Below, in pieces: positions 9,124 to 64,000 of a DNA stretch of 64,000 bases (position 1 is the stretch's first letter; each line of letters begins with the position of its first letter). Both the position numbers and the translations under genes were made by a program. Origin of the DNA: Scyliorhinus canicula. Lineage: Eukaryota. Location of the stretch: the NCBI RefSeq assembly GCF_902713615.1, contig NC_052146.1, positions 309,768,335-309,832,334 on the forward strand, read 5' to 3'. The notes beneath the pieces were generated by a model. The model saw only the letters and a program-made list of their open reading frames with translations, was not told the origin of the DNA and made no database searches.

Positions 9124-9442
9124 TTTAGTGGCGACATCCTGCCGGGACACGGTTGTAAGTGGTAACCCCACTCCGTCCAGGACCCTGAAATTTGAATTGG
9201 AACTCCAAAATACAGAGAAAGTAAAAAAATCACAAGTCTTCAAGGTGTTCAAACTAATAAGTGTAATTCGGAAGTGTGTTTAGTGCATGCGTACTAACAG
9301 GGCTGTAAGGTAAAACTGAAAGCTTTTTGTTGCGACAAACTTTCGGTAGTTTTGTGAACGGAACATAGCATAAGCCGTACCCGTTTCGTGAGACACAACC
9401 CCAGCACCCCCTGTTCCAAATTTAAAAAGAGAGTCAGAGAAA

Positions 9443-14100: not shown

Positions 14101-15427
14101 CCCTTGTAGGAATGGCTATAAATACGTTCTGGTGGTGATCGACACTTTTACCAAGTGGGTAGAGGCATTTCCCTCTCGTACGAACACAGCTAAGACAGCT
14201 GCTAAAATTCTGACGCACCACATCTTCACAAGATGGGGTTTACCGCGTAGTATTGATTCGGACCAGGGATCTCATTTTACAGGACGTGTCATGAAGAGCG
14301 TCCTGACAATATTTGGCATAAAACAAAATTTCCACATTGCGTATCATCCACAGTCCAGCGGGATTGTGGAGTGCATGAATCGGACCCTAAAAACAACCCT
14401 TAGGAAAATGGTACAGGAAAACAATTCGACATGGGATTCAGTGCTCCCATTTGCACTCATGTTCATAAGAAACACTGTCTCCACATCCACAGGTTACACA
14501 CCACACAAACTCATGACCGGACGCCCTATGAAAGGTACAGAATTCCTTTTAGGACTGGACATGACTAGCCCCGAAGTAACGGCCCTCACCCATGAAAGAG
14601 CAGTTAAAGACCTAGTTGAGACTGTGAGGTCTGCACAGCTCGCAGCCGCAGTTCGACTAGGCAAACGACGTCAGCAAAGCACTGCGTGCTTTGACAAGAC
14701 TGTTCACCCCACAGAATTCCAGGTTGGGCAACAGGTAATGTTATCTGTTTACAACCCCAGCAGTTTTTTGGCTCCAAAATTTTCCGGCCCCTACTCAATT
14801 GCGGATAAAATTAGCCCCTCTGTGTATAAAATCAAATATCCTAACGGGAAGACTGCGTGGTTTCATATTAACCAGCTTAAAGCATATGGAACACAGTCTA
14901 ACCATGCTCATCATGTACTGCTAGATGCAGCAGAACACTTCACCCCGCCCACTAGAGACACTTTTCCACCATCCCCCTCACAGACCAGTTCATCAATGGA
15001 CTCGCCCACGACTCCGCCCACTGACCACGACAGACCACGCCCCGAAACGCCCACAAGCTGCCGCAGCAGAGACAGCAGGACAGACACTGACTCTGAGGAC
15101 AGCGACAGCACACAGCCATACAGCCCACACTGCACCAACTACGACCCCGACTCCAGTGACCCCATGGAAGTCACTTACCTTAAAAACCCAGAACCACCAC
15201 CCGACCCCGACTACCCCGACAACACACTTGACACAGCACTCTGGCACAGGGACAATTCGTGCAGACTTGTCCGCAACGATGAAAGTGACCCCCGGTCACA
15301 TAATTATAAGATTGCATGCCTGATCCACACAAGGGTGTGGGATCCGGGAGAGCAGGACGACACGGTGTCTGAATCCCGATACGGCAACCCCTTTGTGACC
15401 CTGTTCACAGAGGCAGAGTCAAAGTGA
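11198..15427 (+). CDS. pol: Pro-Pol in frame with gag: protease, RT, degenerate RNase H, second RNase H, integrase
   Basis: LLWDTGGS (Asp codon 11303), LPQGF, YVDD, IEVAST..AYASR, IYVDGSS..AELAAI..YSDS..GNVKADALA, HDGHGH..CLIC, IDFIGP..DSDQG..GIVE, GPY. Confidence 0.96.
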   Translation, partial: RCSGSPTWVCDTLWDPSGRPVVTAKVKGKPIELLWDTGGSRTTINSTTTAQADTWPTTSTITLSGFTGHSQQGHITAPVAIQLGNISTKHPVVLVNLPRTAEHILGIDFMNAHSLSFDPVNQCVWRMARSDRAPATLKVGEYANRISAVGEYSFDLTTLHTDRQIKALLNKHRTAFASHRHDCGRMTGPIHVTGPDPRPQKQYRFPLEAEAEIEKVIGSLLEQGVLRTVASTNNAPIWPVRKPDGSWRLTIDYRELNKVTPAVAPTIATSPETMLKQGLNSKYFTVLDISNGFWSIPLAKACQYKFAFTFKSQQYTWTCLPQGFHNSPSIFHRQLASGLEKFSRPECLVQYVDDLLLQTDTKAEHISLLAELLELLTEIGCKVNPRKAQILADKVMYLGTVITHGKREIEFKRIDLIVKLPLPQNVSALRSFLGLVGYCRNHIDGFATKAAPLSDLLKKGAPWEWLPQHTEAVEELKRALSAAPALLVPDPLSPFAIEVASTDLTLSAVLLQERHEQLRPVAYASRLLDPVEQGFSACERHLLAVFWAVQYFSYITGLNPITILTEHTPTQLLLDGRLKDGSVSQIRAARWTLLLQGRGITVKRTRTHTYLADNLQYPGQPHDCEIVAPLHNTGPFIAKTPPRKIGNPAQGTPHADTCGPLRIYVDGSSTVLNGERITGCGIYVEDAQGRALEEIALKLPGHLGAQAAELAAIAYIVDHPDSFPSPADIYSDSLYVCNSFTDFLPLWRTRGFVSADGKPLPSAPLLQHILEKAKDRTFGIIKVRSHHRSSPPGNVKADALAKAGSRRGHLWTPPPASAPASAPVSAVQVSQTDIKDLVEAQKQDEDLREIFKGNFVPQYDRFKHALTTHEGVIIKDQLYVVPKQDRNQMIALFHDGHGHQGIDTTTRHLRQLCWWPNLRTDVTHYIENCLICAQNNPERYSKKAQLRHTRPVNGPWTNLQIDFIGPLPPCRNGYKYVLVVIDTFTKWVEAFPSRTNTAKTAAKILTHHIFTRWGLPRSIDSDQGSHFTGRVMKSVLTIFGIKQNFHIAYHPQSSGIVECMNRTLKTTLRKMVQENNSTWDSVLPFALMFIRNTVSTSTGYTPHKLMTGRPMKGTEFLLGLDMTSPEVTALTHERAVKDLVETVRSAQLAAAVRLGKRRQQSTACFDKTVHPTEFQVGQQVMLSVYNPSSFLAPKFSGPYSIADKISPSVYKIKYPNGKTAWFHINQLKAYGTQSNHAHHVLLDAAEHFTPPTRDTFPPSPSQTSSSMDSPTTPPTDHDRPRPETPTSCRSRDSRTDTDSEDSDSTQPYSPHCTNYDPDSSDPMEVTYLKNPEPPPDPDYPDNTLDTALWHRDNSCRLVRNDESDPRSHNYKIACLIHTRVWDPGEQDDTVSESRYGNPFVTLFTEAESK

Positions 15428-18061: not shown

Positions 18062-18829
18062 AGGTGCAGAGGATTCCGCACCTTTGGGGCGGCTCGACGC
18101 CGGAGTGGTTCCCGCCACTCCTTCCCGTCAGGGTTGATTCCCGTCCCGCTGATTCCCGCAGAATCCCGCCCCACTTATTTCGGGAATTGTGGGAGGAAAC
18201 CAGAGGACCCGGAGGAAATCCACGCAGACACGATGAGAAACATGCAGACTCCGCACTGACAGTGACTCACGCCGGGAATCGAAACTGGGACCCGAGATCA
18301 GTGAAGCAACAGTGCCAACCACTGCGCTGCAGTGCAACCCATTAGCCCCATTTTCCCCTTTAAAATAAATTGTAATTCTTTGAATTTAAATATTCCTGAA
18401 ATGAAATGAAAATGAAAAGCGCTTATTGTCACAAGTAGGCTTCAATGAAGTTACTGTGAAAGCCCCTTCTCGCCACATTCTGGCACCTGTTCGGGGAGGC
18501 TGGTACAGGAATTGTTGCTGGCCTGCCCTGGTCTGCTTTCAAAGCCAGCTATTAAGCCCAGAGTGCTAAACCAGCCTGTGTGTGTTTATCTTGGTGTGTA
18601 CAAATTGAAAAACTTCAACAATGAGTCACTTTTCACAAGATTCAATCCTAAACAATAAAGCGACTGATTTTTTATTGACTCACACAAATATATTTTGCTT
18701 TATTCAAATGAATCAGCTCTTCGGTTCAATCTTAGAATCTGGTTCTCTCCTTTTCAAACAGAACATTCTCTTTAAACACTTTGGAACCTTCAGACTGGTG
18801 TTTAACTTGTTGATATTTTTCTCTGAAAG

Positions 18830-19174
18830 GTGCGAATGCTCCAGTCCTTATCCAGTCCCCGAGTCTGGAATGTGTCACAGAGGGTCAGACTGCACGGTTA
18901 CAGTGCACCATGCGGAACGCCGCAGTGACACACACCGATGTTCACTGGAACCGGGAGCTGCCAGGGAAAGATATGGAAAGGGTTTTAACACATGATATAA
19001 AGAATAACACACAATGGAGTCCGGGTTTCACTGAGCGTTTCCATCCTTCCCGAGACACGGCCAATAAAACCTTCATCCTGACAATCAGCAACGTGCAGCC
19101 CAGTGACACTGCCGTCTATTACTGCTCCGTGTGGGGAGATATCAGTGGGAATGGATCACAGCTGAATGTAACCA
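18830..19174 (+). CDS. Receptor gene A, exon VJ2: second germline-joined V-J Ig domain
   Basis: AG at 18828-18829, donor GTAAGT at 19175, phase 1/1, 345 nt: GANAPVLIQSPS..LQC..VHWNR..DTAVYYCSVWGDISGNGSQLNVT. Confidence 0.93.
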
Positions 19175-20970: not shown

Positions 20971-21365
20971 ACTCTGTGGAAGAAGTTTTTTTCTTCATTT
21001 CACATTTGCCTTTTTTGCAAATTATTTTTTTGCCCGCTGTCTCAATCTTTTCAGAAAGGGGAACAGTTTCTCCCTGTCTGCTCTGGTCAGAACTCCAGTG
21101 ATTTTGAACATCTCTATCAAATCTCCTCTGATCCTTCTTCTCTCCAAGGAGAATGGTCCAACTTCTCCAATATATCCCCAGAACTGAAGTTCCTCATCCC
21201 TGGATCCATTGTCTTGAATCTTTGCTGCACTCTCTCCGATACCATCACATCCTTCCTAAAGTGCGATACCCAGAATTGGATGTAATATTCTGATTGAGGC
21301 TGAACTAATATCTGAAGCTGAATATACTGAAGCTGCCGTGTGTCTAACATTCTGATATTTTACAG

Positions 21366-21516
21366 AACAATCATCCAACAAGAATCCCAGGACTTCAGAT
21401 GTGATTGTTTTAAGCACGGGGATAATTCTGGCCTTTGTTGTCTTGTTCTGCTTTGCTCTGCTCACATGTTATCTTGTAAAAAAGAGGTTGCACTCTGCAA
21501 AGAACTCCACACAAAG
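21366..21516 (+). CDS. Receptor gene A, stalk + transmembrane exon
   Basis: tttacAG acceptor, GTAAAT donor, phase 1/2: (K)QSSNKNPRTSDVIVLSTGIILAFVVLFCFALLTCYLVKKRLHSAKNSTQ(R); uncharged TM, basic stop-transfer. Confidence 0.88.
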
Positions 21517-23260
21517 GTAAATATGACTCATCTTGTGTTTGATACTGTTACTGCACAGGGTCATTATTTTATAACTTGCTGCTTTTATTGAGCAGACACA
21601 TTCCCCTTGCAGCCAAGCGTTCAAGTGGTGTGAGCTGGTACTGTTGAGACCAACACATGTGCCAGTGCCTGACTGGTGCCAGTCATCTCCAACTGTCCTG
21701 GCATCACAACCACCCCAGTATTGACCAACAGGCACCTAACTGCTGCTGCTGAGAGCCAGGATGGTTTTAACAGTTGAAGCTCTAAACCTCGCCCTTCGGA
21801 CATTAGTGCTGGATAATTGCCACCCTCGCCCTGCGTGCTGGTTCAGTGCCCGTGTCTCGCTGGCTGCACAGTCCCTCATGGTGGTTAGAACAAACTAGTG
21901 TTCATGCTCTCTGTCTAAACAGCCCATGTCGGCCTTTACTCTCCTCACAAGGAAATAGTTCTCATCATATTCACACCATGTTCCCATATCTCTTCAGCGT
22001 TCTTTTTCATCACCTCCCTCTCCAATCTAATCTCAAATGTTGACATTATTTCTGCCTCACCCACTAGTCTGGGTGAATCCCACATCCTCCCGACTCTGTG
22101 TCAAGATATTTCCCTGCCCTCTTCTAAGTCTCTTCCATAAGCTTGTGTTCAGAGCTCCTCAATCTTCACCCTCCCTGCAAAAGTCTGCTTCCATCTCTTC
22201 TATCCCAAGTTTAAAGAATTTTGAAGACCTTTGATCATATTGCTCTGCAATCTGGGTTATGCTGATGATAAAAAATGTCTCCCGTCTTTCTTTGTATTTG
22301 TTTTCCTGACACCAGATCCAATCCCAGTGAATCTGTCCTGTTTCCTCACTAAAGCCTGACAGCTTAATCAGCTTGGAGTGGAGAGCTCTCTAGCATGTCT
22401 TCCAAAACTGATATAACTTTCACTGTCAGTGAAGGACAGACAGCCTCGGTGTTTCTTAACTAACATTCAAAACATTCAAATATTCCGGAGAATATTGGGC
22501 AAAATGGGTGTTGAAATTTCCAGGTTGTAACGAGACAGCAGTGAGTGCATGGCCCAGATAGCGGAAAATCCAAGTATTCATTGTGGATTCACTGGGAGCC
22601 CAGGGGAATCCTGACCAGTCTGGTTTAGGTGGTGTGACCGTGGACATCTGCACAGTTTGCATTGCTTTGATAGAAATTAGATGGATCAGATTTCCCAGGA
22701 GAAATCCGCACTGTTTCCAGCTCTTTCCCAAAGTGTGACATGCTTTGTGTTTATTGAGTTGGGAGGTTAATGGGGTGGTGAAAACGGCAGATGGGACACT
22801 TGCCTTTATCAATCGGGGCATCGATTACAAAAGCAGGGAGGTCATGTTGGAGTTATGTAGAACTTTGGTGAGGCCACAGCTGGAGTACTGTGTCCAGTTC
22901 TGGTCACCACATCATAGGAAGGATGTGATTGCACTGGAGGGGGTGCAGAGGAGATTCACCAGGATGTTGCCTGGGATGGAACGTTTAAGTTATGTTTCAT
23001 AGAACATAACTTAAATGTTCCATCCCAGGCAACATCCTGGTGAATCTCCTATGAAGAGAGTTTGGATTCCTTTCTTCATCTGAGAGCAAATTCTGCTTAT
23101 TTAGTGAATGATTCCGGATATCTGGCTCATCCGTGTCATCGTCCTTAAAAACTGGAATCAAAGGTCCATGTTGGGAAATCTAAACTCCGTCTCCAGCAAG
23201 AGTGTGACCTGTTGTTCTGCGGTAATGCTGCAATGAAGCTAATGTGTGGCATTTCTTTAG

Positions 23261-23304
23261 GATCCCTGATGAAGACCAGAACCCTGTGTATGCAACAGTG
23301 GACG
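23261..23304 (+). CDS. Receptor gene A, cytoplasmic exon 1 (YATV)
   Basis: atttctttAG / GTGAGT, phase 2/1: IPDEDQNPVYATVD. Confidence 0.82.
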
Positions 23305-26100: not shown

Positions 26101-26373
26101 AATTTACAAGATTCCGGATAAAAAGCAGGAATGTGGGATTAGGCACAATGGCCCTTTACAGAATCAGCACAGATTCAATGGGCTGAATGGCCTCCTCCTG
26201 TTCTGTGAGTTTCAGATTTCTCTGATGAGCTTTATAATGGAGAGGAGGCCTCATGTCTCCCGGGAAAACTGCCCAAGTCACTCCGGAATTTTCATTTGTT
26301 ATCATTCCCAGTTTCCTGAGCTCGACCTTTACATGGATCTGTTCTGAAGAACCATCTTTTTGTTTTCTTTCAG

Positions 26374-26426
26374 ATAAAACACGGAGCAGCAATCAAGAGG
26401 TTCAAGAAGCCCCTCCTGCTCCTTTG
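26374..26426 (+). CDS. Receptor gene A, cytoplasmic exon 2
   Basis: tttttgttttctttcAG / GTAAGG, phase 1/0: (D)KTRSSNQEVQEAPPAPL. Confidence 0.8.
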
Positions 26427-28010: not shown

Positions 28011-28127
28011 TCAGGTGAAGGGGAATGCAAATATGCTGGGCTTCGATTCCATTGCCCAGGTACCAGGCAGCCGGCAGTATCACTGACTGAAAGCACGGCG
28101 GAGTATGCTGTTGTTCAACGTTCTTAA
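28011..28127 (+). CDS. Receptor gene A, terminal coding exon with two ITIM-like motifs
   Basis: ttacAG acceptor, phase 0: SGEGECKYAGLRFHCPGTRQPAVSLTESTAEYAVVQRS*. Confidence 0.85.
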   Translation, partial: SGEGECKYAGLRFHCPGTRQPAVSLTESTAEYAVVQRS

Positions 28128-43000: not shown

Positions 43001-43189
43001 CTGGCAGTGATCAAGGAGACAAAATTAGGAGCAAGAAAGGATGGCCTGGCAGATTATTTTTGAGCTAAACCAGAATAGAATGTGGAATGAAGTGTAGAGA
43101 GTGTGGGGGACAGGCACCAGCTGGGGGTTAATGTGCAGAAATCATTGAAAGTGGCAGGACAGGTGGAGAGAGCAGTTACTGAAGCCCAG

Positions 43190-44480
43190 GAGAAACCTTT
43201 TCACACAGCGAATGGTTGGAATCCGGAATGTTCTGTCTGAGAGTGTGGTGAAGACAGATTCACACAGCGAGTGGTTCGGATCTGGAATGTACTGTATGAG
43301 AGTGTGGTGGAGACAGATTCACATAGCGAGTGGTTAGGATCCGGAATGTTCTGTCTGAGAGTGTGGTGGAGACAGATTCACACAGCGAGTGGTTAGGATT
43401 CGAATGTTCTGTCTGAGAGTGTGGTGGAGGCAGATTCACACAGCGACTGGTTGGAATCCGGAATGTTCTGTCTGAGACCGTGGTGGAGGCAGATTCACAT
43501 AGCGAGTGGTTAGGATCGGGAATGTTCTGTCTGAGAGTGTGGTGGAGGCAGATTCACACAGCGAGTGGTTAGGATCCGGAATGTTCTGTATGAGAGTGTG
43601 GTGGAGGAAGGATTCACACAGCGAGTGGTTAGGATCCGGAATGTTCTGTATGAGAGTGTGGTGGAGGCAGATTCACACAGCGAGTGGTTAGGATCCGGAA
43701 TGTTCTGTCTGAGAGTGTGGTGGAGGCAGATTCACACAGCGAGTGGTTAGGATCCGGAATGTTCTGTCTGAGAATGTGGTGGAGGCAGATTCACACAGCG
43801 AGTGGTTAGGATCCGGAATGTTCTATCTGAGAGTGTGGTGGAGACAGATTTACACAGCGAGTGGTTAGGACCCGGAATGTTCTGTCTGTGAGTGTGGTGG
43901 AGGCAGATTCACATAGCGAGTGGTTAGGATCCGGAATGTTCTGTCTGAGACCGTGGTGGAGGCAGATTCACACAGCGAGTGGTTAGGATCCGGAATGTTC
44001 TGTCTGAGAGTGTGGTGGAGGCAGATTCACACAGCGAGTGGTTAGGATCCGGAATGTTCTGTCTGTGAGTGTGGTGGAGGCAGAGCCACACAGCGAGGGG
44101 TTAGGATCCGGAATGTTCTGTCTGAGAGTGTGGTGGAGGCAGATTCACACAGCGAGGGGTTAGGATCCGGAATGTTCTGTCTGTGAGTGAGGTGGAGGCA
44201 GATTCACACAGCGAGTGGTTAGGATCCGGAATGTACTGTCTGAGAGTGTGGTGGAGGCAGATTCACACAGCGAGTGGTTAGGATCCGGAATGTTCTGTCT
44301 GTGAGTGTGGTGGAGGCAGAGCCACACAGCGAGGGGTTAGGATCCGGAATGTTCTGTCTGAGAGTGTGGTGGAGGCAGATTCACACAGCGAGGGGTTAGG
44401 ATCCGGAATGTTCTGTCTGTGAGTGAGGTGGAGGCAGATTCACACAGCGAGTGGTGAGGATCTGGAATGTTCTGTCTGAT
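43190..44480 (+). repeat. 59-bp minisatellite derived from the CR1 ORF2 3' end
   Basis: (gtggttaggatccggaatgttctgtctgagagtgtggtggaggcagattcacacagcga)n. Confidence 0.95.
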
Positions 44481-46798
44481 TTTATGGGCCAGGTCTCAGA
44501 AACTCCAAAGTATATTATGAAGTCCACCTGACCTACAACCTTTCTGTTGAATTTGACAAGGTTGAGCACAACAGCCTTCCTTCAGTTGTGATTCATCAGT
44601 TTTCCTCGACACTTTAATCAAAACAAGCTTTATTCTAAGAACTTAGTTAACATATATATATAAACACACAGCAAGAGTTTTTGATAATATTTATCAATTA
44701 CAAACATAAAGACACAACACAGCTACAGTAATCTATGTATAACACTGAATGAATTCCCCCTTAACTGTTCCAATTCAAAAACAAAATCCAATAAACCAAA
44801 AACCATTTTCATGAGCACTTTGCATTCTCACTTGAATAAGACTGGCTTTTCCTGAGATTCTGACCCCGTCTCACCTGCAGTTTTATACCCCTTCTGGAAA
44901 GCTGGCTATATCTTTCAAATTACCAAAGGGATGGGAACAAAGGGAGATAGTTTGGTGAGAAGCTGGCAGTTCAGCCTGGGGAAATGGAAAAAGATGGTGG
45001 GTAGAATTGGGGATGTGGGAAGAATGTGAGTATAAGGAGTTGAGCTATGAAATAATGACACTATTTTGATCATGTTCCTAATCGTCCTTATGCTCCTGGC
45101 CTCGGAATGGTGTCATATCGAAGGATAATTTCTGAAGTTCAGGAGCCGGGAGCTTGTCTATTGCCTGTTCAAACAAAATTAAAAATAGATTAGTTTCCAA
45201 AACTAAAGCTGCAGCCAACGTGAGAATAAAGGATAATTTCAGCTCCTCTGAGGAGTTTGTCCAGATTGTAACTCTGTTCTTAATGACGGGGAAACTCCCA
45301 GACTCCATCTCCAGCCTGCACAGAGTGAGCTGATCCCAGATGGAATGACAGTCGGGGCTACAGTTGGTCTGAACACCGAGTGGATATGAAAGGAAAATTG
45401 TTCAGTATTCCCACTCCATACACTGGGAATCATGGCTGGAAATGTATGTGTACATGTTATTGAATATCTGTGTGTCAGTATATGTGAACGTGTACACGTG
45501 TCTGTGTGTCTGTGTACATTTGGGAATGTGTGTCTGTCTGTAGATATTTCGGTCTATCTTTGTACCTGTGAATATGTGTGTATCGATTGGTTATATATGA
45601 TGGACAAATTTGAAGTAATGCATTTTGGAAGGTCTGATACAGGTGGAATAACACAGTAAATGGCAGAGCCCTTCAGAGTATTGACAGGCAGAGGGATCTG
45701 GCCGTACAGGTCCACAGGTCACTGAAAGTGGCAGCACAGGTGGATCGGGTAGTCAAGAAGGCAAACGGCCTGCTTGCCTTGATCTGTCACGGCATTGAGT
45801 ATAAGAAATGGCAAGTCATGCTGCAGCTGTACAGAACCTTAGTTCGGCCGCATTTCGAATATTGTGAACAATTCTGGTCAGCACACTACCAGAAGGATGT
45901 GGGTGCTTTGGAGAGAGTACAGAAGAGGTTTACCAGGTCTGGCCTGGAGGGTATTGAACTTGATGATCAGCAATGATCAGAATGAATGTGGGAGCAGGCT
46001 CGAAGGGCCGAATGGCCTCCTCCTGCTTCTATTTTCTATGTTTCTATGTATTAGTTATGTGGGGAGGTTGGATAAACTCTGATTGTTTTGATTGGAATGA
46101 CGGAGGCTGAGGGGCGACCTGACAGAGATTTATAAAATGATGAGTAGCATGGAGAGAGTGGATCATGAGAGGCTTTTTCCCAGGGTGAAAAATTCACTTA
46201 CCCAGGGTCATAGGTTCGAGGGGCAAAGTTTAGAGGAGATGTTCGAGGCAGGTTTTTTACACAGAGTGTGGTGGGTGCCTGGAATGCTCTGCGGGAGGAG
46301 GTGGTGGAAGGAGATACTATAGCGACGTTTGAGAGGCATCTTGACAATTACATGAATAGGATGTGAATAGAACAGAGAACATACAGTGCAGAAGGAGGCC
46401 ATTCGGAGGAAACCAGAGCACGCGGAGGAAACCCACGCAAACACGGGGAGAATGTGCAGACTCCACACAGCCAGTGAATAGAGGGATACGGACCCCGGAA
46501 GTGCAGAAGGTTTTAGTTCAGTCAGGCATCACAATCTGTGCAGGCTTGGAGGGCCGAAGGGCCTGTTCCTGTGCTGTACTTTTCTGTGTTCTTTATACAC
46601 ACAACATGAAATATATTACCACATGAGGATAATAATGGTCCATTGTCAGACTGGATTCCCTGCTCTCTATCGATTCTCTGCAGTGTTGCTGAAATGGGTC
46701 CATTTTGAGTCAGGCTTTCCCAGTTTCACCATTTATACAAAAAGTGACAGAATTCACCTGCTTTCCCTGACCCTCTGTTCAGTGTAATAGAAACATAC

Positions 46799-46841
46799 CT
46801 TTAATCTCACTGTACACAGACGAAGTTGGTTGCTGTAATGC
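46799..46841 (-). CDS. Receptor gene B, ITAM exon 2
   Basis: ctattttccctcAG / GTATGT, phase 0/1: ALQQPTSSVYSEIK. Confidence 0.82.
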
Positions 46842-47804
46842 CTGAGGGAAAATAGAGACATGTTAGAAATTTTGATCGTGTCACACGTGCACAATGAGAG
46901 GTTTATTTGGAAATGTTCTACATTCTAATGATAGCTGTTTATGGGCAAAAGGAGTGCGGTAACTGTTGAAATTCTATTAGGTGATGTCTGGCAGGACCAG
47001 TACTACAGGTTCGTTAGTAGACCCTGCCTGCTGGCTCCGCCCAAGAGGCGGAGTATAAATATGTGTGTTCTCCATGCTGCAGCCATTTTGCCAGCTGCTG
47101 TGGGAGGCCACATATCTTAGAGCAATAAAGCCTCAGTTGTATCCAACTCAAATATTTGCATCAATTTATTGCTCTAAGATTTTCGAAAGATGGTCCTCCA
47201 TATGAAAAATGAAAATTGCTTATTGTCGCGATTAGGCTTCAATGAAGTTACTGTGAAAAGCCCCTAGTCACCACATTCCGGCGCCTGTTCGGGGAGGCTG
47301 TTACGGGAATATCAAACCGGATCGCCTGCAGCTGGATCCGCATTCAAGCGACGCCAAAACGGACTCTCAACATTGGCTAGCTTGTTTCGAGGCGTACATC
47401 AACTCCGCGTCCACCCCTGTCTCGGAGGCTCAGGAGATACAGATCCTGCCCTCAAGGTTGAACTCCAGCGTCATTCCGCTAATCCTGGACATGCCGAACT
47501 ATGCCGAAGCCATGCCGCTTCTCAAGGAGAATTACGCTTAAATCCCACTGATCCGGGATTGTGACTGTCAGGCCGTTACGGCCACTGAACATTCAAATCT
47601 CCTTATGTGGGACGCGTTTGTTACAGGGATTGGGTCGGACCTCATACGCCAGCGACTGTTAGAGGGGCCCACGCTCGTCCTAGTGGAGACCAAGAAACTG
47701 GCGTTCTCCATGACGGTCACCTCGTGCAACGTTCAGGCCTACACACCCAGCCACGCGGCCCACCCCTCCTACACATCGTGGGCCCCACAGACGGCTGCCC
47801 CAGC

Positions 47805-48385
47805 GGGGGCCTTACCCAGCGGGGGCCTTACCCAGCGGGGGGCCCTTACCCAGCGGGGCCGTTACCCAGCGGGGGCCTTACCCAGCGGGCCCTTACCCAG
47901 CGGGGCCCTTACCCAGCGGGGGCCTTACCCAGCGGAGCCCTTACCCAGCGGGGCCCTTACCCAGCGGGGGCCTTACCCAGCGGGGGCCTTACCCAGCGGG
48001 GGCCTTACCCAGCGGGTCCTTACCCTGCGGGGCCCATACCCAGCGGGGCCTTACACAGCGGGGGCTTTACCCAGCGGAGGCCTTACCCAGCGGGGGCCTT
48101 ACCCAGCGGGACCCTTACCCAGCGGGGGCCTTACCCAGCGGGGGCCTTACCCAGCGGGACCCTTACCCAGCGGGGGCCTTACCCAGCGGGGGCCTTACCC
48201 AGCGGCGCCCTTACCCAGAGGGGGGGGCATTACCCAGCAGGGCCCTTACCCAGCGGGGCCCTTACCCAGCGGGACCCTTACCCAGCGGGGCCTTACCCAG
48301 CGGGGCCCTTACCCAGCGGGGGCCTTACCCAGCGGGGCCTTACCCAGCGGGGGCCTTACCCAGCGGGACCCTTACCCTTACCCAG
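47805..48385. repeat. About 15-bp minisatellite inside the Gypsy gag
   Basis: (ccttacccagcgggg)n variants. Confidence 0.95.
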
Positions 48386-50102
48386 CCAATACGTCTGCGC
48401 CACGCACCAGTCAGCAAACCACGGGGTCGCCGATGTTATTTTTTGCAGCCAAGACACCCCCACCAACGGTGCCCGGCCCACGCTGCCCTTTGTAAGGCTT
48501 GCGGCAAGAAGGGGCACTTTGCCGCGGTGTGCCAGGCCTGTCCAGCCGGAACTATCAACCCCACCCCCCTCGTTATGGACAATGGGCGCCGCCATCTTCA
48601 CCTCCCCGGACCAAGCGTGGCCAGTGGGCGCCGCCATCTTCCCCTCCGAGCAACACGTGCGGCCCATGGGCACTGCCAGCGTTCCAGGATCGGGGCCCCC
48701 CGGGCTCCCCATCATCTGACACCAGCGACGACCGCCTACGACTCGCCTCAGTGACCATCGAGCAGCCTCGTCCGCACAAGCTGGTCACCGCATCGACCAG
48801 CGTTAAAGTCAACGGGCACGTGACCTCTTGCCTGCTGGACTCCAGGAGCACGGAGAGCTTCATCCACCCGGTTACGGTAAGGAGCTTCTCCCTCGCGGTA
48901 CACCCCGCCAATCAAAGAATCCCCCTGGCCTCCAGATCCCATTCCGTGGCGATCCGCAGTTACTGTACGGTCACACTCAAGGTCCAGGGCGTAGAATTCA
49001 GCGGCTTCCGTCTCTACATCCTCCCTAACCTCTACGCTGCCCTACTGCGAGGCCTGGAGTTCCAGTGCAACCTCCAGAGCCTAACCCTGAAATTCGGCAG
49101 GCCCCTACCACCCCTCACAGTGTGCGGCCTCGCGACCCTAAAGGTCGATCCACGTTCCCTCTTCGCATATCTAACCTCAGATTGCAAACCCGTTGCCACT
49201 TGGAGCAGATGGTACAGCACCCAGGACAGGATCTTCATCAGGTCCGAGGTCCAGCGGCTGCTTTGGGAAGGTATCATCTAGGCCAGCAACAGCCCCTGGA
49301 GAGCCCAAGTGGTAGTAGTTAAAACTGGGGAGAAACACAGAATGGTCATGGACTACAGCCAGACCATCAATCGGTACACGCAGCTCGACGCGTACCCCCT
49401 CCCTCGCTATGTCTGATATGGTCAATCAGATTGCACAGTACCGGGTCTTCTCAACTGTAGATCTCAAATCCACCTACCACCAGCTCCCCATTTGGAAATT
49501 GGACCGTCCATACACTGCCTTTGAGGCAGATGGCCGCCTCTATCACTTCCTCAGGGTTCCCTTCGGCGTCACCAACGGGGTCTCAGTCTTCCAAAGGGAG
49601 ATGGACCGAATGGTCGACAGTACGGTTTGCAGGCCACCTTCCTATACCGAGACAACATCACCATCTGCGGCCATGATCAGCAGGGCCACAATGCCAACCT
49701 TGCCAAATTTCTCCACACCGCCACTCTCCTCACCTACTACAAGGAGAAGTGCGTGTTTAGTGCGACCCGCTTAGCCATACTCGGCTATGTGGTCCAGAAC
49801 GGAGTTCTGGGGCCCGATCCCGACCGCATGCGCCCCCTCATGGAGCTCCCCATCCCCCACCGACTCAAGGCCCTCAAACGCTGCCTGGAGGTCTTTTCGT
49901 ACTACGCTCAGTGAGTCCCAAACTATCCGGACAAGACCCGCCCACTCATGCAGTCCACCCATTTTCCCCTGATGGCCGAGACACAACGGGCCTTCGCCCG
50001 TATCAGAGCCGGTATTGCCAAGGCCAGGATGCACGCAGTAAACGAGACACTGCCCTTTCAAGTAGAGTGCGACGCATCAGACGTCGCCGTGGCCGCCACC
50101 GT

Positions 50103-50340
50103 CAATCAGGCAGGCAGACCCTGCCCTGGCCGCCACCCTCAATCAGGCAGGCAGACCCTGCCCTGGCCGCCACCCTCAATCAGGCAGGCAGACCCTGCCC
50201 TGGCCGCCACCCTCAATCAGGCAGGCAGACCCTGCCCTGGCCGCCACCCTCAATCAGGCAGGCAGACCCTGCCCTGGCCGCCACCGTCAATCAGGCAGGC
50301 AGACCCTGCCCTGGCCGCCACCCTCAATCAGGCAGGTAGA
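50103..50340. repeat. 37-bp tandem repeat inside the Gypsy RNase H
   Basis: (caatcaggcaggcagaccctgccctggccgccaccct) x6 + partial. Confidence 0.93.
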
Positions 50341-52212
50341 CCCGTGGCATTCTTTTCCCACACCCTTCATGCCTCAGAAATTCGACACTCATCCATCAAG
50401 AAAGAGGCCCAAGCTATCATTGAAGCTGTGCGGCATTGGAGGCATTACCTGGCTGGCAGGAGATTCACTCTCCTCACTGACCAACGGTTGGTAGCCTTCA
50501 TGTTCAATAACACACAGCAAGGCAAGATCAAGAATGATAAGATCTTGAGGTGGAGTATTGAGCTCGCCACCTACAATTACGAGATTTTGTATCGCCCCGG
50601 TGAGCTCAATGAGCCCCCAGACGCCCTATCCCGAGGTACATGTGCCAGCGCACAAGTAGACCGACTCCTGACCCTGCACGACAGCCTTTGTCACTCGGGA
50701 GTCACATGGTTGGACAATATCATAAAGGCCCGCAATCTGCCCTACCCCCTCGAGGAAGTACGGACAATTACCAGGGACTGCCATGTCTGTGCGGAGTGCA
50801 AGCCGCAATTCTACAGGCCGGACCGTGCGTACCTGGTGAAGGCCTCCCGCCCCATTGAACGCCTGAGCATGGATTTCAAAGGGCCCCTCCCCTCCACCAA
50901 CCGTAACACATATTTTCTCAGTGTGGTCGATGAGTACTCCAGATTCCCCTTCGCCATCCCATGCCCCGATATGATGTCTGCCATTGTCATCAAAGCCCTC
51001 AACACAATCTTCGCTCTGTTCGGTTTCCCGGCCTACATCCACAGTGACAGGGGATCCTCCTTTATGAGTGATGAGCTGTGTCAGTTCCTGCTCAGCGGGG
51101 GTATCGCCTCCAGCAGGACGACCAGCTACAACCCCCGGGGAAACGGACAGGTAGAGAGGGAGAACGGGACGGTATGGAGGGCCATCCAAGTGGCCCTACA
51201 GTCCAGGAACCTCCCAGCCTCCCGCTGGCAGGAGGTCCTCCCTGATGCACGGCACTCCATTCGGTCACTACTCTGCACCGTCACTAACAACACACCCCAT
51301 GAACGTCTTTTTCCTTCCCCAGGAAGTCCACATCCGGGGTGTCGCTCCAGACTTGGCTTGCAGTTCCAGGAACCGTCTTGCTCCGTAGGCACGTCCGACT
51401 CCACAAGGCGGACCCGTTGGTGGAAAGGGTACAGTTGCTCAATGCAAACCCCCAGTATGCCTACGTGGCGTACCCCGACGGCCGGCAGGATACTGTCTGC
51501 CTCAGGGACCTGGCACCAGCAGGTTCAACACCCCCCCACCCCCCCAGCCCTGCACCAATCTACCCTCCCCCAGCCCTCCCAGCAGCAACCCCTCCCAGGG
51601 CCATCCGTAGTCCCCTGCCCCACGCCCGAGGATGAAGAAGATTTTGGCACGCTCCCGGAGACACCGGACATCGGATCAGCATCGCATCTCCGACACCACT
51701 ACGTCGCTCACAGCGGCATATCAAGGCCCCGGACCGGTTAAACCTCTAACTGGTCCACTGAACTTCAAAAGACATTTTTTTTTCTCCCTCTGTCAAAGAT
51801 TATAAATGTAAATGTAAAAAGAAAACCATTTGTTGTACATCGTTCTCCACCACCCCCACCGGACTCAATTTTAACAGGGGGTGAATGTGGTAAACGACTG
51901 TTACACTTCTATCAGGTGATGTATGGCAGGATCTGTACTACAGGTTCATTAGCAGTCCCTGCCTGCTGGCTCCGCCCAGTAGGCGGAGTATAAATATGTG
52001 TGTCCTCCATGCTGCAGCCGTTTCGCCAGCTGCTGTGGGAGGCCACACATCTTAGAACAATAAAGCCTCAGTTGTACCCAACTCAAGTCTTTGTGCAATT
52101 GATCGAGCATTAAGGAATTTATTTTACTATATGTCGAAGGAGGAAACTTTGATCATGTGGTGAATGTTGATCACCAGACATATCCCTGTTTGTTGCAGTG
52201 AGAGATATTTAC

Positions 52213-52254
52213 CGTGTACGTTGGGTCAGAATCTGCTGGAGAATCTTTCAAATT
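52213..52254 (-). CDS. Receptor gene B, ITAM exon 1 (distal copy)
   Basis: ttttgtttcAG / GTAAAT, phase 0/0: NLKDSPADSDPTYT. Confidence 0.8.
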
Positions 52255-52769
52255 CTGAAACAAAATGTAAATAGTGAAGATTGGGTTTAGTAGCTGTTGT
52301 GAAAATGAGAGTTTACTAAAACCTGATTATAATGTGTCAGGAATTATAGTCTGGAAAGGTTTATATTTCCATGACGGTGTCCGATTTCTGACACAGTTGA
52401 ATTCAGCAGGAGGTAAAGTACATTACACTCAGAATCTTTCACACAATCTTTCCAGTGCAGAAAGAGGCCCCTCGGCCCATCAGGTCTGTACTGGCCCTCT
52501 GGAAGAACATTAGACTGAGACCCACACCCCTGCCTTATCCCCAGAACATTGCACATTCTCACATTCCAGATAACAATCCAATTCCCTTTTGAATATCTCG
52601 ATTTCACCTCCCTCCACCACCCTCACAGGAAGTTCATTCAACCTCTGGCTCACTTCTTCTCCTTTTGCTCATTATTGTGAATGTGTGCCCTCGAGTTCTT
52701 GATGTACATTTGAATGGGAACAGTTTCTCCTGTACGAATGTATTATCTCCATATTTATTGATGAAAGAA

Positions 52770-54960
52770 AGTTGTGTGGGAGGGTGAGCTGTGAGGAGGA
52801 TGCAGAGATGCTTCAGCAGGATTTGGACAGGCTGAGTGAGTGGGCACATGCATGGCAGATGCAGTATAATGTGGATAAATGTGAGGCTATCCACTTCAGT
52901 AGCAAAAATAGGAAGTCAAATATAATTTGAATGGATATAAATTGGGAAAGGTGGATAATCAGCGAGACCTGGGTGTCCTCGTGCATCAGTCGCTGAAAGT
53001 AAGCGCGCAGGTACAGCCGGCAGTAAAGAAGGCAAATGGTCGGCTGGCCTTCATAGCCAGAGGATTTAAATACAGGAATAGAGATGTTTTACTGGAATTG
53101 TATGGAGAATTGGTGAGGCCACACCTCGAGTATTTTTCTGCAGTTTTGCTGTCCGTATCTGAGGAAAGATGTTCTTGTGGGTATAGAAATCAGGGAGAAG
53201 GAGTGCAATATAATTAAAGAGATTACTGCAGACAGAGAGGAGGTTCTGAGTGGTGTGGCAGGCTCTAAAGTAGATAATTCTCCAGGTAGAAGGACTTTGA
53301 TAAATGTAGAAGGACTTACAAGAGAGGGATCTTGGTAAACGGCAGGACCCTGGGAAGCACCGAGTTTCAGAGGCAATTTGGTGTGCATGTACACCCATCC
53401 CTTAATGTAGCAGTGTAGGTGGATACAGTGGTTAAGAAGGCCTCTGTATACTTGCCTTTATTGTCACAATATGTGGATTTGGTAATGAACATCAAGGGTC
53501 AATGGAATGTTCCGACTCTCGTCACAAAATGGAGGTTTAGAGCAACCATATAAATACCACATTCCTCCTTGACTTCAGAGATAGAGTGAGAGAGTGTGGA
53601 AGGAAGTCAGTCGTGGTAGATGTGAGATTAGTTTAGCTGATAGCACAGTTTAGTCTTGTAGTGTATTCTTTACTTCTCTAATTCCTCAGCAAATGTTTGA
53701 ATCTGATTATGTGTAGTGTAATAAATTAGCTTTGTTTGTTAAACACTGCTGGCTGTTCTTTGTCAACACCACAGCCTTCAAAGAACAAAGAAGAACAAAG
53801 AACAAAACAGCACAGGAACAGGCCCTTCGGCCCTCCAAGCCTGCGCCGACCATGGTACCTGTCTAAACTAAAACCGCCTGCACATACGGAGTTTGTATCC
53901 TTCCATTCCCACCCTATTCATATATTTCTCCAGATTCCCCTTAAATGCCGCTATTGTACCTGCTCCCACCACCTCCCCAGGCAGCGCTTTCCATATATTT
54001 ACCACCCTCTGTGTAAAAAACCTGCCTCGCACATCTGTTCTAAACTTTTTCCCACGTATTTTAAACCTATGCCCCCTAGTACCTGACTCTCCTACCCTGG
54101 GAAAGAGCATCTAACTATCCACTCTGTCCATGCCACTCATAATCTTGTAGACCTCTATCAGGTCGCCACTCAACCTCCATCATTCCAGTGAGAACAGACT
54201 GAGTTTATCTAACCTCTCCTCATAGCTAATGCCCTCCATACCAGGCAACATCCTAGTAAACCGCTTCTGTACCCTCTCCAAAGCATCCACATCCTTATGA
54301 CAGTGTGGCGACCAGAATTGTCCACAATATTCCAAATGAGGTCTAACTGAGGTCCTGTACAGCTGCAACATCATTTTCCATTTTTTATATTCGGAAACCG
54401 GAGCACCCGGATGAAACCCACGCACACACGGAGAGAACATGCCGACTCCGCAAAGACAGTGACCCAACCTGGGAATCGAACCTGGGACCTTCGAGCTGTG
54501 AAGCAATTTTGCTAACCACTATGCTACCGTGCTGCCCTGTATACAAGGATTACTGTCAAGGCCCCAGCAATTTGCTCCCTTGCCTCCCTCAGTATTCTGG
54601 GGTCGATCCCATCAGGCCCTGGGGATTTATCTACTTTAATGCTTTTTAAGATGCCCAACACCTCCTCTTTATTAATATCAACATGACTCAGAATATCTAC
54701 ACTCACTTCCCAATACTTCTCATTCCCCAAATCCTTCTCTTTGTGAATACTGAAGGAAAGTATTAATTTAGTATCTCTCCCATTTCCTCTGGTTCCATAC
54801 ATAGATTCCCTCCAATATCATTGAATGGACCAACCCTTTCTCTGGCTACCCTCTTGCTCTTTACATATGTTGAAAACACCTTGGGATTTTCCTTCACCAT
54901 CCTGAAGAACAATACAAAGAACACAACACCGTCAATACAATACTTGGGACCAATCAGATC
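52770..54960. mobile_element. CR1 fragments on both strands, SINE and LTR-like piece
   Basis: QRDLGV, HLEY, FTQRVV motifs; minus-strand RT pieces. Confidence 0.75.
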
Positions 54961-55040
54961 CCAGAAAGAGGAAACTTTAATCATGTGGTGAATGTTGATC
55001 ACCAGACATATCCCTGTTTGTTGCAGTGAGAGATATTTAC

Positions 55041-55082
55041 CGTGTACGTTGGGTCAGAATCTGCTGGAGAATCTTCCAAATT
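55041..55082 (-). CDS. Receptor gene B, ITAM exon 1 (proximal duplicate)
   Basis: Same splice sites intact, phase 0/0: NLEDSPADSDPTYT. Confidence 0.72.
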
Positions 55083-56941
55083 CTGAAACAAAATGTAAAC
55101 AGTGAAGATTGGGTTTAGCAGCTGTTGCGAAAATGGGAATTTACTAAAACCTGATTATAATATATCAGGGATTATAGTCTGGAAAGGTTTATATTTCCAT
55201 GACGGTGCCCGATTTCTGACACAGTTGAATTCAGCAGGAGGTAAAGTACATTACACTCAGAATCTTTCACACAATCTTTCCAGTGCAGAAAGAGGCCCCT
55301 CGGCCCATCAGGTCTGTACTGGCCCTCTGGAAGAACATTAGACTGAGACCCACACCCCTGCCTTATCCCCGGAACCTTGCACATTCTCACTTTCCAGATA
55401 ACAATCCAATTCCCTTTTGAATATCTCGATTTCACCTCCCTCCACCACCCTCACAGGAAGTTCATTCAACCTCTGGCTCACTTCTTCTCCTTTTGCTCAT
55501 TGTTGTGAATGTGTGCCCTCGAGTTCTTGATGTACGTTTGAGTGGGAACAGTTTCTCCTGTACGAAATGTATTATCTCCATATTTATTGATGAAAGAAAG
55601 TTGGGTCAACCTTTTTTTTTTAGAATTTACAGTGCAGAAGGAGGCCATTCAGCCCATCGAGTCTGCACTGGCTCTTGGAAAGAGCACCCGACCCTATCCC
55701 CATAACCCAGTAACCCCACCCAACACTAAGGGCAATTTTGGACACTAAGGGCAATTTATCATGGCCAATCCACCTAACCTGCACATCTTTGGACTGTGGG
55801 AGGAAACCAGAGCACCCGGAGGAAACCCACGCACACACGGGGAGGATGTGCAGACTCCGCACAGGCAGTGACCCAAGCCGGAATTGAACCTGGGACCCTG
55901 GAGCTGTGAAGCGATTGTGCTATCCACAATGCTACCGTGCTGCCCTACAATGCTACCGTGCTGCCCTTGGCTGCCTCTGGCTCACCTCGTCTCCTTTTGC
56001 TCTGGGGCACTAACAATTGCACACAAAGACTCGAGACATATACAATCGAGGCTGTATTGCTGTGTGATGCTATTCCTCCTGCGGCAGCTGTTGAATAGGA
56101 TCTCAGTGGCTCACACACATATTTATACACAAGCTCCCTGTAGGCGGAGCTAGCCGGCAGGGGCTTACTGGAGGAACCTGTATTACAGGTACAGCCATAC
56201 ATCCCCCTACTGCAAGTATTCATATCTACAGTGGTTATATCACCACATGCTCATTATTGTGAATGTGTGCCCTCTAGTTCTTGATGTACGTTTGAGTGGG
56301 AACAATTTCTCCTGTACCTACCCTGTCCGTTCAGAATGTCCAATTCACCTAATAAGCACGTCTTTTGGGTCTTGTGGGAGGAAACCGGAGCACCCGATGG
56401 AAACCCACGCAGACTCGGGGAGAACGTGCGGACTCCACACATACAGTGACCCAAGTTAGGAATCGAACCGGACTTCCTGTGAGGCAATTGTGCTAACCAC
56501 TGTGCTACCGTGCCGCCCACATGAGGCCCTCATTTCCCTTTCACACATTCCCAATTCCCGCTGGGATACAATGGGAGGGAGAGAGCCTTCCCTATACTGA
56601 GGATGCATTGTGGGTGGCAGTAGAGTTCCCTGAGAGACGAAGAGGTCCAGCACTGCCCACCAGAAGAGAGAATTACAGATGAGTCTTTCCAACCTTTTCC
56701 CAATCCCTCCCAATGAGTGTTGCCGAGGAATATGGAGATAGTTGGGATCAGATCTCCTGCTCTCTCTCTGAATGTCACTGAGTGATGGTCCAATCACATG
56801 GATTGTATTCATTGAGAAAATGCAATGTTGGTGTGTGCAGAGGAAATGGATCTGAAATCACAAACTGACATTGACACCAGCTCCCCCGGTGGGCCCTTTG
56901 CTGTTACACAAAGACAGACAGTAAGAAACAGCCAATCTCAC

Positions 56942-61740: not shown

Positions 61741-62037
61741 TGTGTCAATATCCTGGCACTGTTCGTTTGAGGGTTTGTCCATTCATTCATTCTGTTAATT
61801 GTTCATTTGATGCTGAAAAGAATACAAGAGGAGAGTGATGGGACACTGGAGTGGGTGAGGGGGGAGGCAGACCTGTGCAATGTTGCATTCTGTAAATGAA
61901 TCCAGTATTGAATAAAAGATTGGCGTCCGATTCTCTATTTCAGCATCAGCCTTCACAATCAGTTAACATTCCCTCATTCTGGAATTCTGCCCAATTTCAT
62001 CACCATCAACTCAAACGGAATGAATTTTCACACATAC

Positions 62038-62154
62038 CGGATCGTTTTCTGAGACAAATTGTGACTAAAATTCCTCCAATTAGCACAGGCCCAGCAGCCA
62101 GAATGACATAGACAGGTATCAGCATCGAAACTTGATCAGCTTGTGTTTCATTAA
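62038..62154 (-). CDS. Receptor gene B, stalk + transmembrane exon
   Basis: tttcctttcacAG / GTATGT, phase 1/1: NETQADQVSMLIPVYVILAAGPVLIGGILVTICLRKRS; uncharged TM, NET sequon, basic stop-transfer. Confidence 0.87.
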
Positions 62155-64000
62155 CTGTGAAAGGAAATCACATGTTTCAGCCCAAAGGAAACAAATAGAA
62201 CTTGCATTTAAAGAGGATCTGGGACACAATAACCTATCCCGAGGTGCTTCACAATCCTGATACCCAGCAAGATATGCAGCAACAGGGGGAGATGGTCAAA
62301 GGAATGGGTTTCAAGGGGAATGTTAAAGGAGGAACGAGAGGGGGAGAGGTTTCGGGAAGCAATTCCAGAACTTTAGGATCCAGGCAGCTGAGGGCACGAA
62401 TGCCAATGTTGGAGCGATTAAAATTGGGAATGGGGCAAGTGATCAGAATGGCAGCAGCTCAGAGATCAGAGGGTTATGGGGTTGGAGGAGATTGCAGAGA
62501 TAGGGAGGAGTTAGGATGTGTAGGATGTGGGGCTGGAGGAGATTACAGAGATTGGGAGGGGTGGGGACATGGAGGGTGTGGGCCTGGAGGAGTTTACAGA
62601 GGTAGGGAGGGGTGAGGAGTGGACTATGTGGGGTTGAGGGAGGTTACAGAGATAGGGAGGGGTGGGGATATGGAGGAGGTGGGCAGCAATGTAGCATAGT
62701 GGTTATCACAATTGCTTCACAGCTTCAGGGTCCCAGGTTTGATTCCCCGCTGGGTCACTCACTGTGTGGAGTCTGCACCTTTTCCCCGTGTGTGCGTGGG
62801 TTTCCTCAGGGTGCTCCGGTTTCCTCCCACAGTCCAAAGATGTGCAGGTTAGGTGGATTGGCCATGCTAAATTGCCATAAATGTCCAAAATTGCCCTTAG
62901 TGTTGGGTGGGGTTACTGGGTTATGGGGATAGGGTGGAGATGTGAGCATGGGTAGGGTGCTCCTTCCAAGAGCCGGTGCAAACCCGATGGGCCGAATGGC
63001 CTCCTTCTGTACTGTAAATTCTATGAAAAAAAAATCTATGTGGGGTTGGAGGAGATGACAGAGATAGGGAGGGGTGAGGACATGGAGGATGAGGGGCTGG
63101 AGGAGATTACAGAGATAGGGAGGGGTGAGGACATGGAGGATTTGGGGCTGTGAGAGGTTACAAAGACAGGGAGGGGTGAGGACGTGGGGCTAGAGGAGGT
63201 TACAGAGATAGCGAGGGGTGAGGATGTGGAGGATATGGGGTTGGAGGAGAGGCCCAATCCCTGCCTTATCGCTGTAAATCAACCTAACCAAACCTTTGGA
63301 CAATAAGGGTCAATTTATCATGGCCAATCCACCTACCCTGCACAACTTTGGACTTTACGAGAAAACCGGAGGACCCGGAGAGAACCCACGCAGACATGGG
63401 AGAACGTGTAAACTCAACACAGACTTTCACCTGAGGTCTGAGTCGAACCCGGGTCACTGGCACTGTGAGGTCGCAGTGCTGAAAACTGTGCCACCATGTC
63501 ACCCTTATAGACTAATGCTACCGATTCATACTAAGCTCCAATGTAATATATGTAAGTTTTCTAGTTCCATGTGTTCAGGAACGAAGTTGGGAACAATCTT
63601 TATTTGACCAAGTATTGCACAAAGAGGAAGTGTTACTTCATAGTGTTATAGTAAAGGGGCCTCTGGGAAAGAGTGATCCTAACACAATAGAATGATATAT
63701 TGAGTTTTTAAGTGATTTTGTCCAGGTTTAAATGTGAACAATCTATCCAGGGATGAGAGACAATTTGGTGAATATATGATGGGTGGGATTTACCGACCAC
63801 TCCGCCGCATGTTTTCAACGGGCGGGCAGCTCGACAGCGGGATGTACCGTTCCCACCATTGTCAACAGGATTTCCCATTGACGGCACCTGTTGTCACCGG
63901 GAAGCTTGTGCGCCATCATGGGACTGGAATTCCCGCCGGCATGAACATCCGGTAAATCCCAGTGGATATACAAGCAATGAACAACATTTGAATGATTAAT

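Follow-up and report, generated by a model that had tools for sequence, protein, structure and literature searches.

The question raised by this locus is whether two tiny open reading frames on either side of a decayed retroelement are joined in a real gene and, if so, what kind of receptor that gene encodes. The window analysed here is a stretch of 64,000 nucleotides (nt) of contig NC_052146.1 from the catshark Scyliorhinus canicula, and the two frames lie on its minus strand, where they spell the two halves of an ITAM, the tyrosine-based activation motif of immunoreceptors. They are the ITAM-coding exons of LOC119976723, a gene whose product is a type I membrane receptor carrying three non-rearranging V domains of VJ type in tandem, and this receptor is probably an adaptor-independent activating receptor whose ITAM would recruit Syk-family kinases.

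The first of the two, exon A (52254-52213, minus strand; tttcag/AAT...ACG/gtaaat), has 42 nt in phase 0/0, reads NLKDSPADSDPTYT and supplies the first half of the ITAM, ending after Y-T. The second, exon B (46841-46799, minus strand; ccctcag/GCA...AAAG/gtatgt), has 43 nt, begins in phase 0, ends in phase 1 and reads ALQQPTSSVYSEIK plus G, the second half. Joined in phase 0, they give D-P-T-Y-T/A-L-QQPTSSV-Y-S-E-I, with tyrosines Y453 (YTAL) and Y464 (YSEI) and an aspartate at position -3. Direct reading of the window places a GT..AG intron of 5371 nt (46842-52212, minus strand) in phase 0 within the first YxxL (ACG/gt ... ag/GCA). The same phase-0 split is found in the FcR-gamma, DAP12, CD3 and CD79 genes. 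The joined string fits the consensus for ITAMs given in PMC5112662, D/E-x2-Y-x2-L/I-x6-8-Y-x2-L/I, and two papers on CEACAM genes call the split of the first YxxL in phase 0 typical or characteristic of ITAMs (PMC2110893, PMC5112662).

Evidence that the exons are spliced together came from sequencing runs of the same species, X15 and X16 (study P10), X1 (P1) and X4 (P3), which were compared with positions 46500-52450 of the window. The joint 46841/52213 was present in one contig of each of these four runs, from three studies, at depths of 413 (X15), 280 (X16), 169 (X1) and 28 (X4). The skipped 5371 nt begin with CT and end with AC on the plus strand, that is, GT..AG on the minus strand. The joint proves splicing of the exon pair in S. 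canicula, though not strictly of this copy. Pointing to this copy, a 241-nt contig of X15 matches intron positions 52300-52450 without mismatch, where the flank of a second copy of exon A (A', described below) differs at seven sites; provided that X15 is RNA, for which the joints speak, transcription comes from this locus itself.

Two further observations were made at the joint. In X1 a second junction form carries C to T at 52214 (minus strand), giving ATG for ACG and hence Y-M/A-L, at a depth of 62 compared with 169; this form is an allele or an expressed paralogue, and methionine is the residue of other sharks. Beside exon B, a loose end in X16 with a 30-letter consensus had no match in the window at up to 3 mismatches, also when searched as two halves; with an agreement of only 0.72, the consensus is probably a mixture of this gene and a paralogue.

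The two exons belong to a longer reading. Six exons in the window (TM, Cyt1, A', A, B and last) together encode 113 residues that are 100% identical to residues 364-476 of P0044, the 476-amino-acid product of S. canicula LOC119976723, which RefSeq calls an 'uncharacterized protein' and which was found by searching with the tail of a catshark paralogue. All six lie on the minus strand. The exon for the stalk and transmembrane (TM) segment (62154-62038; phase 1/1, AG/GT edges) corresponds to P0044 residues 364-402 and contains the uncharged helix MLIPVYVILAAGPVLIGGILVTICL, followed by RKRS; a Pfam scan of this exon returned sub-threshold noise only. Next comes Cyt1 (57015-56942; 74 nt, phase 1 to 0, cacag/CT..TGG/gtgag), which reads ASSGRAGDQSQAAGDRYPRWTGSRW, and then exon A' (55082-55041; 42 nt, phase 0/0), an upstream copy of exon A that reads NLEDSPADSDPTYT and is included in P0044. 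After A and B, the coding part of the last exon (45164-45139; gaacag/GC..TGA), located from the whale shark structure and P0044, reads (G)NRQAPGS before the stop and is identical to the end of P0044. The 3' untranslated region probably runs to an AATAAA at 44634-44629.

The tail is thus read from small exons in the phases TM(1)-Cyt1(0)-A'(0)-A(0)-B(1)-last, which puts the ITAM 51 residues downstream of the TM segment (373-397) in one frame across six exons. Cyt1 is needed because the frame must move from phase 1 at the TM exon to phase 0 at exon A. Direct splicing from the TM exon to exon A was considered and rejected, as phase 1 leads there to a short out-of-frame peptide with a stop. Of the words of 61940-62260, runs X15, X25, X26 and X27 contain 0.24-0.28, a fraction equal to the TM exon's share of that stretch, and the runs contain 0.33-0.55 of the words of 44600-46860.

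Upstream of the TM segment, P0044 consists of a leader and three V-set domains, and a J-like G-N-G-S-x-L-N-V-T strand closes each of the three. These domains show the C...W...YYC pattern, their best matches among solved structures are antibody V domains, and no C2 domain accompanies them. The ectodomain comprises about 360 residues, and its V exons lie beyond the end of the window. Besides Y453 and Y464, the tail has two tyrosines, Y418 (RYPRW) in Cyt1 and Y439 (YTNL), which falls on the joint between A' and A and creates there a YxN site. Cyt1 is homologous to the YENI or YENV exon of other species, the YxN motif having been lost in the catshark: YENI or YENV is retained by other sharks and rays, catshark Cyt1 has R-Y-P-R-W and its paralogues R-N-P-R-W. 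Exon A' lies in a tandem duplication of 643 nt (54964-55606 versus 52136-52777, 96.9% identical, 2828 nt apart) that carries exon A with its flanks. The two copies differ at 1 position in 42 nt (K/E) compared with 19 in about 600 nt of flank, and selection on exon A versus A' was not discernible, the duplication being too young. A 59-nt unit is repeated about 24 times at 43145-44581, immediately downstream of where the receptor gene probably ends, and the array produces a ladder of open reading frames at 59-nt spacing.

Both motif and split are conserved. A first homology search, seeded with V exons of the other strand, led to a large family in sharks and skates and to the tail end in Heterodontus, Heptranchias, Pristiophorus, Chiloscyllium, Rhincodon, Stegostoma and Scyliorhinus; a profile search over 1.84 billion representatives added the rays Hemitrygon and Mobula, in which the second tyrosine stands in Y-G-H-L. 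Relatives from nine genera end in D/N-x-[ST]-Y-[TM]-[AT]-L-Q-x5-[SC]-x-Y-S-[EDN]-[LI]-K. Residues T, Y, L, Q, S and Y of the ITAM are invariant in an alignment of eight sequences, with which the rays and CEACAM-like tails agree, and the spacing between the tyrosines is exactly 7 in every species seen, with the upstream acidic residue and L/I at both +3 positions kept. Direct reading of the whale shark locus L001 gave an exon in phase 0/0 (ttacag/AAT...TACATG/gtaaat) encoding NVKDSPADTTYM, then an exon (ttag/ACA...AAAG/gtatgc) of 43 nt with the size and phase of catshark exon B, and a last exon, GSKQTPKT and stop, homologous to that of the catshark. Predicted isoforms of rays diverge exactly after T-Y-M, and the intron is therefore placed there too. 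The first approximately 20 bases of the intron between A and B (gtaaatatctc.cactgcaa) are near-identical in the catshark (52212-52190) and the whale shark (L001, 17548-17572), and this shared start may be a conserved splicing signal beside a tiny exon.

The profile search just named (hmmsearch with the TM segment and tail, library-wide) also returned CEACAM-like proteins of cartilaginous fish at E values of about 1e-4, with quite different ectodomains: Callorhinchus CEACAM1-like, Heterodontus PSG22-like, Pristiophorus CEACAM6-like (names given by the sequence sources) and an unnamed Cetorhinus protein. All of these end in Y-E-N-[IF] ... T-Y-[MT]-x-L-[QK] ... S-x-Y-[SH]-[DS]-L. When profiles of the tails alone were compared, those of the VJ-type receptors and of the cartilaginous-fish CEACAM-like proteins aligned with a probability of 98.4% and an E value of 7.6e-15 (hhalign). 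Direct reading of the Callorhinchus CEACAM1-like locus L003 revealed the split and exon sizes of the catshark type: VYENINNVQRAKNK/gt is followed by ag/GAA...TACACG/gt (ELAEASDPNATYT, phase 0/0) and ag/ACT... (TLQPHDQSLYSDLRGKMVG). Outside cartilaginous fish, tails of Xenopus Ceacam group 2 have the layout (1)Cyt1(0)Cyt2(0)Cyt3, for example ...VYENIPNTAK / AHPAKEEGPYM / GLQYPSQDTYSELKK (PMC5112662 supplement), and the tail of Xenopus laevis Ceacam387 from the same supplement matched the shark profile with a probability of 95.6% and an E value of 1.2e-8. By these alignments, the catshark tail is an ITAM cassette of the CEACAM type, attached to an ectodomain that is not, and its closest relatives are the CEACAM-type Cyt1-Cyt2-Cyt3 ITAM cassettes, not FcR-gamma, DAP12, CD3, CD79 or NICIR.

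Most of what the first-pass annotation of this DNA had proposed agrees with these results. It had joined the exons into a DPTYT/AL ITAM with a phase-0 split, which the exon edges and the identical P0044 bear out, and had placed the motif on a receptor with an uncharged TM segment, as the TM exon upstream, in a consistent frame and with no charged residue, confirms. Of the checks it named, the junction 52213 to 46841 was found in the four runs, and homology searches led to LOC119976723, through the tail of a paralogue, and to a motif and split kept in sharks and rays. Its description of the split as typical holds for ITAMs in general according to the two CEACAM papers; for the FcR-gamma, DAP12 and CD3 genes that it named, the split is general background knowledge. 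Where it compared the receptor with NICIR and CD79, the refinement is that the tail's closest relatives are CEACAM-type cassettes.

How would such a receptor work? Binding of ligand by the V domains would cluster it, Src-family kinases would phosphorylate both ITAM tyrosines, and the tandem SH2 domains of Syk/ZAP-70 would dock on the phosphorylated residues. An activating signal could then start without a charged-TM adaptor and would oppose that of a neighbouring receptor bearing an immunoreceptor tyrosine-based inhibition motif (ITIM), whose membrane-proximal V domain is almost identical. Several points weigh against this proposal. For every member of the family the signalling role, including phosphorylation, Syk docking and an activating outcome, is one that we infer. 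The second ITAM tyrosine agrees with the ITIM consensus S-x-Y-x-x-I as well. In paralogue P0045 exon A is missing, so that of the two tyrosines only the second, that of exon B, is left, and in P0025 and P0049 a different tyrosine motif, AVYETV or AVYENV, precedes the cassette. CEACAM3-type 'ITAM-like' tails have been grouped apart from true ITAMs (PMC5112662), and homology with CEACAM tails therefore does not settle how the motif signals. As to the splice evidence, the junction contigs are short Logan contigs of about 61-64 nt, with 30-33 nt on the shorter side; paralogues P0028 and P0045 have identical exon sequence, so that the joint between A and B is not assignable to this copy alone; and there is no RNA record for any of the four runs, the splice joint itself being the evidence for RNA.

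The alternative that survives best accepts the exons as real and gives the motif another function: that of a phosphatase site like an ITIM or an immunoreceptor tyrosine-based switch motif (ITSM), of an inhibitory ITAM, or of an 'ITAM-like' sequence for endocytosis or CEACAM3-type phagocytosis. It draws on the P0045 tail, which has exon B without exon A, on the hybrid tails with AVYETV or AVYENV upstream of the cassette, on the fact that SVYSEI, SIYSEL and STYSEL all fit S-x-Y-x-x-[LI], and on the separation of ITAMs from ITAM-like or endocytic motifs within CEACAMs (PMC5112662). Against it stand the constant spacing of 7, the retained acidic residue and +3 L/I, and a split that papers call typical of ITAMs (PMC2110893, PMC5112662). 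In addition, the gene adjoins a distinct partner of ITIM type whose V domain is nearly identical, the usual activating/inhibitory layout. We regard this alternative as unlikely.

A good deal less plausible is a silent or decaying copy at the locus with the retroelement, in which case junction contigs and RefSeq model would stem from paralogues with identical exons. The short arms of the contigs, the identical or near-identical A and B exons in P0028 and P0045 and the second junction form Y-M/A-L in X1 are compatible with this explanation. On the other hand, all six exons are open with canonical splice sites and match P0044 exactly, including the locus-specific tyrosine of Cyt1 and the A'/A pair, the X15 contig without mismatch falls within intron sequence found only at the copy with exon A, and the runs hold the shares of words of the TM-exon stretch and of 44600-46860 given above. 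Finally, the idea that an ITAM-like string arose by chance when two short open stretches were joined, each of only 14 codons and of a kind (flanked by AG and GT) that is common, is already refuted by the observed joint, by the exact match to an annotated protein, by the motif and intron position kept in elasmobranchs and in a chimaera CEACAM-like gene, and by the hhalign E value of 7.6e-15. Activating signalling through an ITAM of LOC119976723 itself remains the likely explanation.

The element that stretches the intron is a degraded long terminal repeat (LTR) retroelement on the plus strand, antisense to the gene (46952-52112, ends approximate), with LTRs, protease, reverse transcriptase, RNase H and integrase. 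Its LTRs (about 46952-47180 and 51883-52112) are direct repeats of approximately 200-230 nt that are 90% identical over 197 nt. Between them, fragments of plus-strand open reading frames match, in order, an aspartyl protease (weakly), RVT_1, RT_RNaseH and rve in Pfam; the frames are broken into several pieces, and tandem arrays of 16-nt and 37-nt units interrupt them. Among solved structures, the integrase is closest to that of foamy virus and the RNase H part to Ty3 Gag-Pol. A target-site duplication was not recognised at the approximate ends of the element. Two LTRs flanking protease, reverse transcriptase, RNase H and integrase are the plan of a Ty3/Gypsy LTR retrotransposon, and retroviruses have the identical order. 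The name Gypsy given to it earlier is therefore safer as Ty3/Gypsy-like or retrovirus-like in view of the foamy-virus-like integrase, the LTR element with its enzyme order being as described.

Without the element the intron would measure about 210-220 nt instead of 5371 nt, in line with the roughly 210 bp and 25-fold stretch estimated before; the homologous whale shark intron (L001) has 1212 nt. Since the LTRs differ by 10% and the copies of the 643-nt duplication by 3%, the insertion looks older than the duplication, whose lower edge, at 52136, is some 25 nt away from the right LTR. An old and decayed passenger in antisense orientation, the element took the intron from approximately 215 nt to 5.4 kilobases (kb) without stopping splicing, and the earlier claim that an antisense insertion is tolerated holds in that it is intronic and splicing passes over it. 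We infer that the insertion was neutral. In any case, insertion of a retroelement is an ordinary event and shows only that splicing works across a long, repeat-filled intron. Within the region compared with the runs, bins 47097-47295 and 46500-46698 reached summed contig depths of at least 10^5; these deep bins are very abundant repeat families in those libraries, the inner LTR edge in one case and an element like a short interspersed element (SINE) in the other.

The ITIM-type neighbour, LOC119976739 (product P0024), is convergent with LOC119976723 and was mapped by tblastn on the plus strand, with a V exon at 18820-19173, a TM exon at 21362-21517 and tail exons at 23259-23303, 26346-26426 and 28011-28124. 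These exons match P0024 at 98-100%, except for 70% over 26346-26426, and the tail carries VYATV, KYAGL and EYAVV. The membrane-proximal V domains of P0024 and P0044 are identical at 116 of 118 positions, with full divergence from the stalk through the TM segment and the tail. LOC119976723 and LOC119976739 look like an activating/inhibitory pair. A near-identical V domain followed by abrupt divergence at the stalk is the usual mark of such pairs, and fits a paired receptor or a recent gene conversion of the V exon.

In the family as a whole, tails are of at least three kinds, ITIM-type, YENI...IYxNV-type and ITAM-type, with hybrids besides. The RefSeq model of P0028 (S. canicula LOC119965573) spans 185 kb and joins an ITIM-type TM segment and tail to two successive ITAM cassettes; it is probably a chimeric model across several genes of the cluster. 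Elsewhere in the window, an open VJ-type V exon at 4404-4772 (plus strand) is only 42-63% identical to the two V domains of P0024; given this low identity it is not part of the P0024 RefSeq product, and perhaps goes unused, is an additional V exon or belongs to a different model. Between the two V exons, 9392-15424 (plus strand) holds open frames of 601 and 1409 amino acids with one stop between them, which together resemble the gag and pol of an LTR retroelement in a far better state, the second frame being judged by eye as pol-like.

Bony fish (NITR) and jawless fish are known to have paired activating and inhibitory receptors of the immunoglobulin superfamily (IgSF) whose V domains are antigen-receptor-like. 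For cartilaginous fish, a description of such a family, the present one included, was not found in the literature searched, which turned up papers on UrIg/UrIg2, NCR3, CD4/LAG-3 and CD79 instead. LOC119976723 is annotated but unnamed, and what is new here is that the family has this ITAM-type member, apparently paired with its neighbour, and that the tail is of CEACAM-type origin. The gene presents an expressed shark receptor in which germline-joined VJ domains like those of antibody light chains sit directly on an ITAM, without an adaptor chain. Its cassette, common with CEACAM-family genes back to chimaera, is a candidate case of tail-exon shuffling between families of immune receptors, and it gives the inhibitory neighbour a candidate activating partner and with it a testable model of VJ-type receptor signalling without adaptors. 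Tentatively, and with rather more doubt than confidence, we suggest that elasmobranchs possess a large, non-rearranging tandem-VJ family with activating/inhibitory pairs, whose activating members gained the CEACAM-type cassette by exon shuffling and in which exon A is switchable. If that were true, tails with exon A skipped or absent would keep an ITIM-like tyrosine only (the P0045 form), those with one exon A would have an ITAM, and those with a duplicated exon A an ITAM plus a new Y-x-N site replacing the one lost from catshark Cyt1.

Among known systems, the teleost NITR and NILT families resemble the catshark genes, by description only, as multigene clusters of non-rearranging V-type receptors (V with J in NITR) with activating and inhibitory members; they differ in being bony-fish families with other domain layouts. 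NILTs are described as carrying an ITAM or ITIMs (PMC3022915). Hagfish NICIR3/ALA is an IgSF receptor with IgV and IgC domains, a TM segment and two ITAMs in its own tail (PMC3634110). It is alike in having a V-type domain, a TM segment and an ITAM in its own tail, and differs in combining IgV with IgC and in having two ITAMs; set beside the catshark gene by description, it is an analogy only. The adaptors FcR-gamma, DAP12, CD3 and CD79 have the ITAM consensus in common with the catshark tail. Adaptor chains have a tiny ectodomain or a single Ig domain, and FcR-gamma, DAP12 and CD3 pair with their receptors via charged TM residues. In contrast, the catshark gene puts a ligand-binding ectodomain and an ITAM on one chain with an uncharged TM segment, and P0044 shows neither the very short ectodomain nor the acidic TM residue of FcR-gamma, DAP12 and CD3-zeta.

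Closest in the tail is the CEACAM ITAM cassette, as in Xenopus group 2, dog CEACAM1-related genes (PMC2110893), Callorhinchus, Heterodontus and Pristiophorus. It is alike in its uncharged TM segment and tail phases (1)-(0)-(0), in a short symmetric exon ending x-Y-[MT] followed by an exon x-L-Q with Y-S-[DE]-L-K, in an upstream YxN in most species, and in the clustering of ITIM and ITAM genes in opposite orientations. Within the cassette, the catshark gene differs in a Cyt1 without YxN and in the duplication of exon A. The ectodomains are set further apart: the N domains of shark CEACAM-like proteins (...SGEYxV...) are without the F-strand cysteine, unlike the V domains of P0044, and where the CEACAM plan has IgC2-like domains after an N domain that lacks the canonical disulfide, the catshark receptor has three V-set domains with a Cys-Trp-Cys core and a J-like G-x-G-x-x-L-x-V strand.

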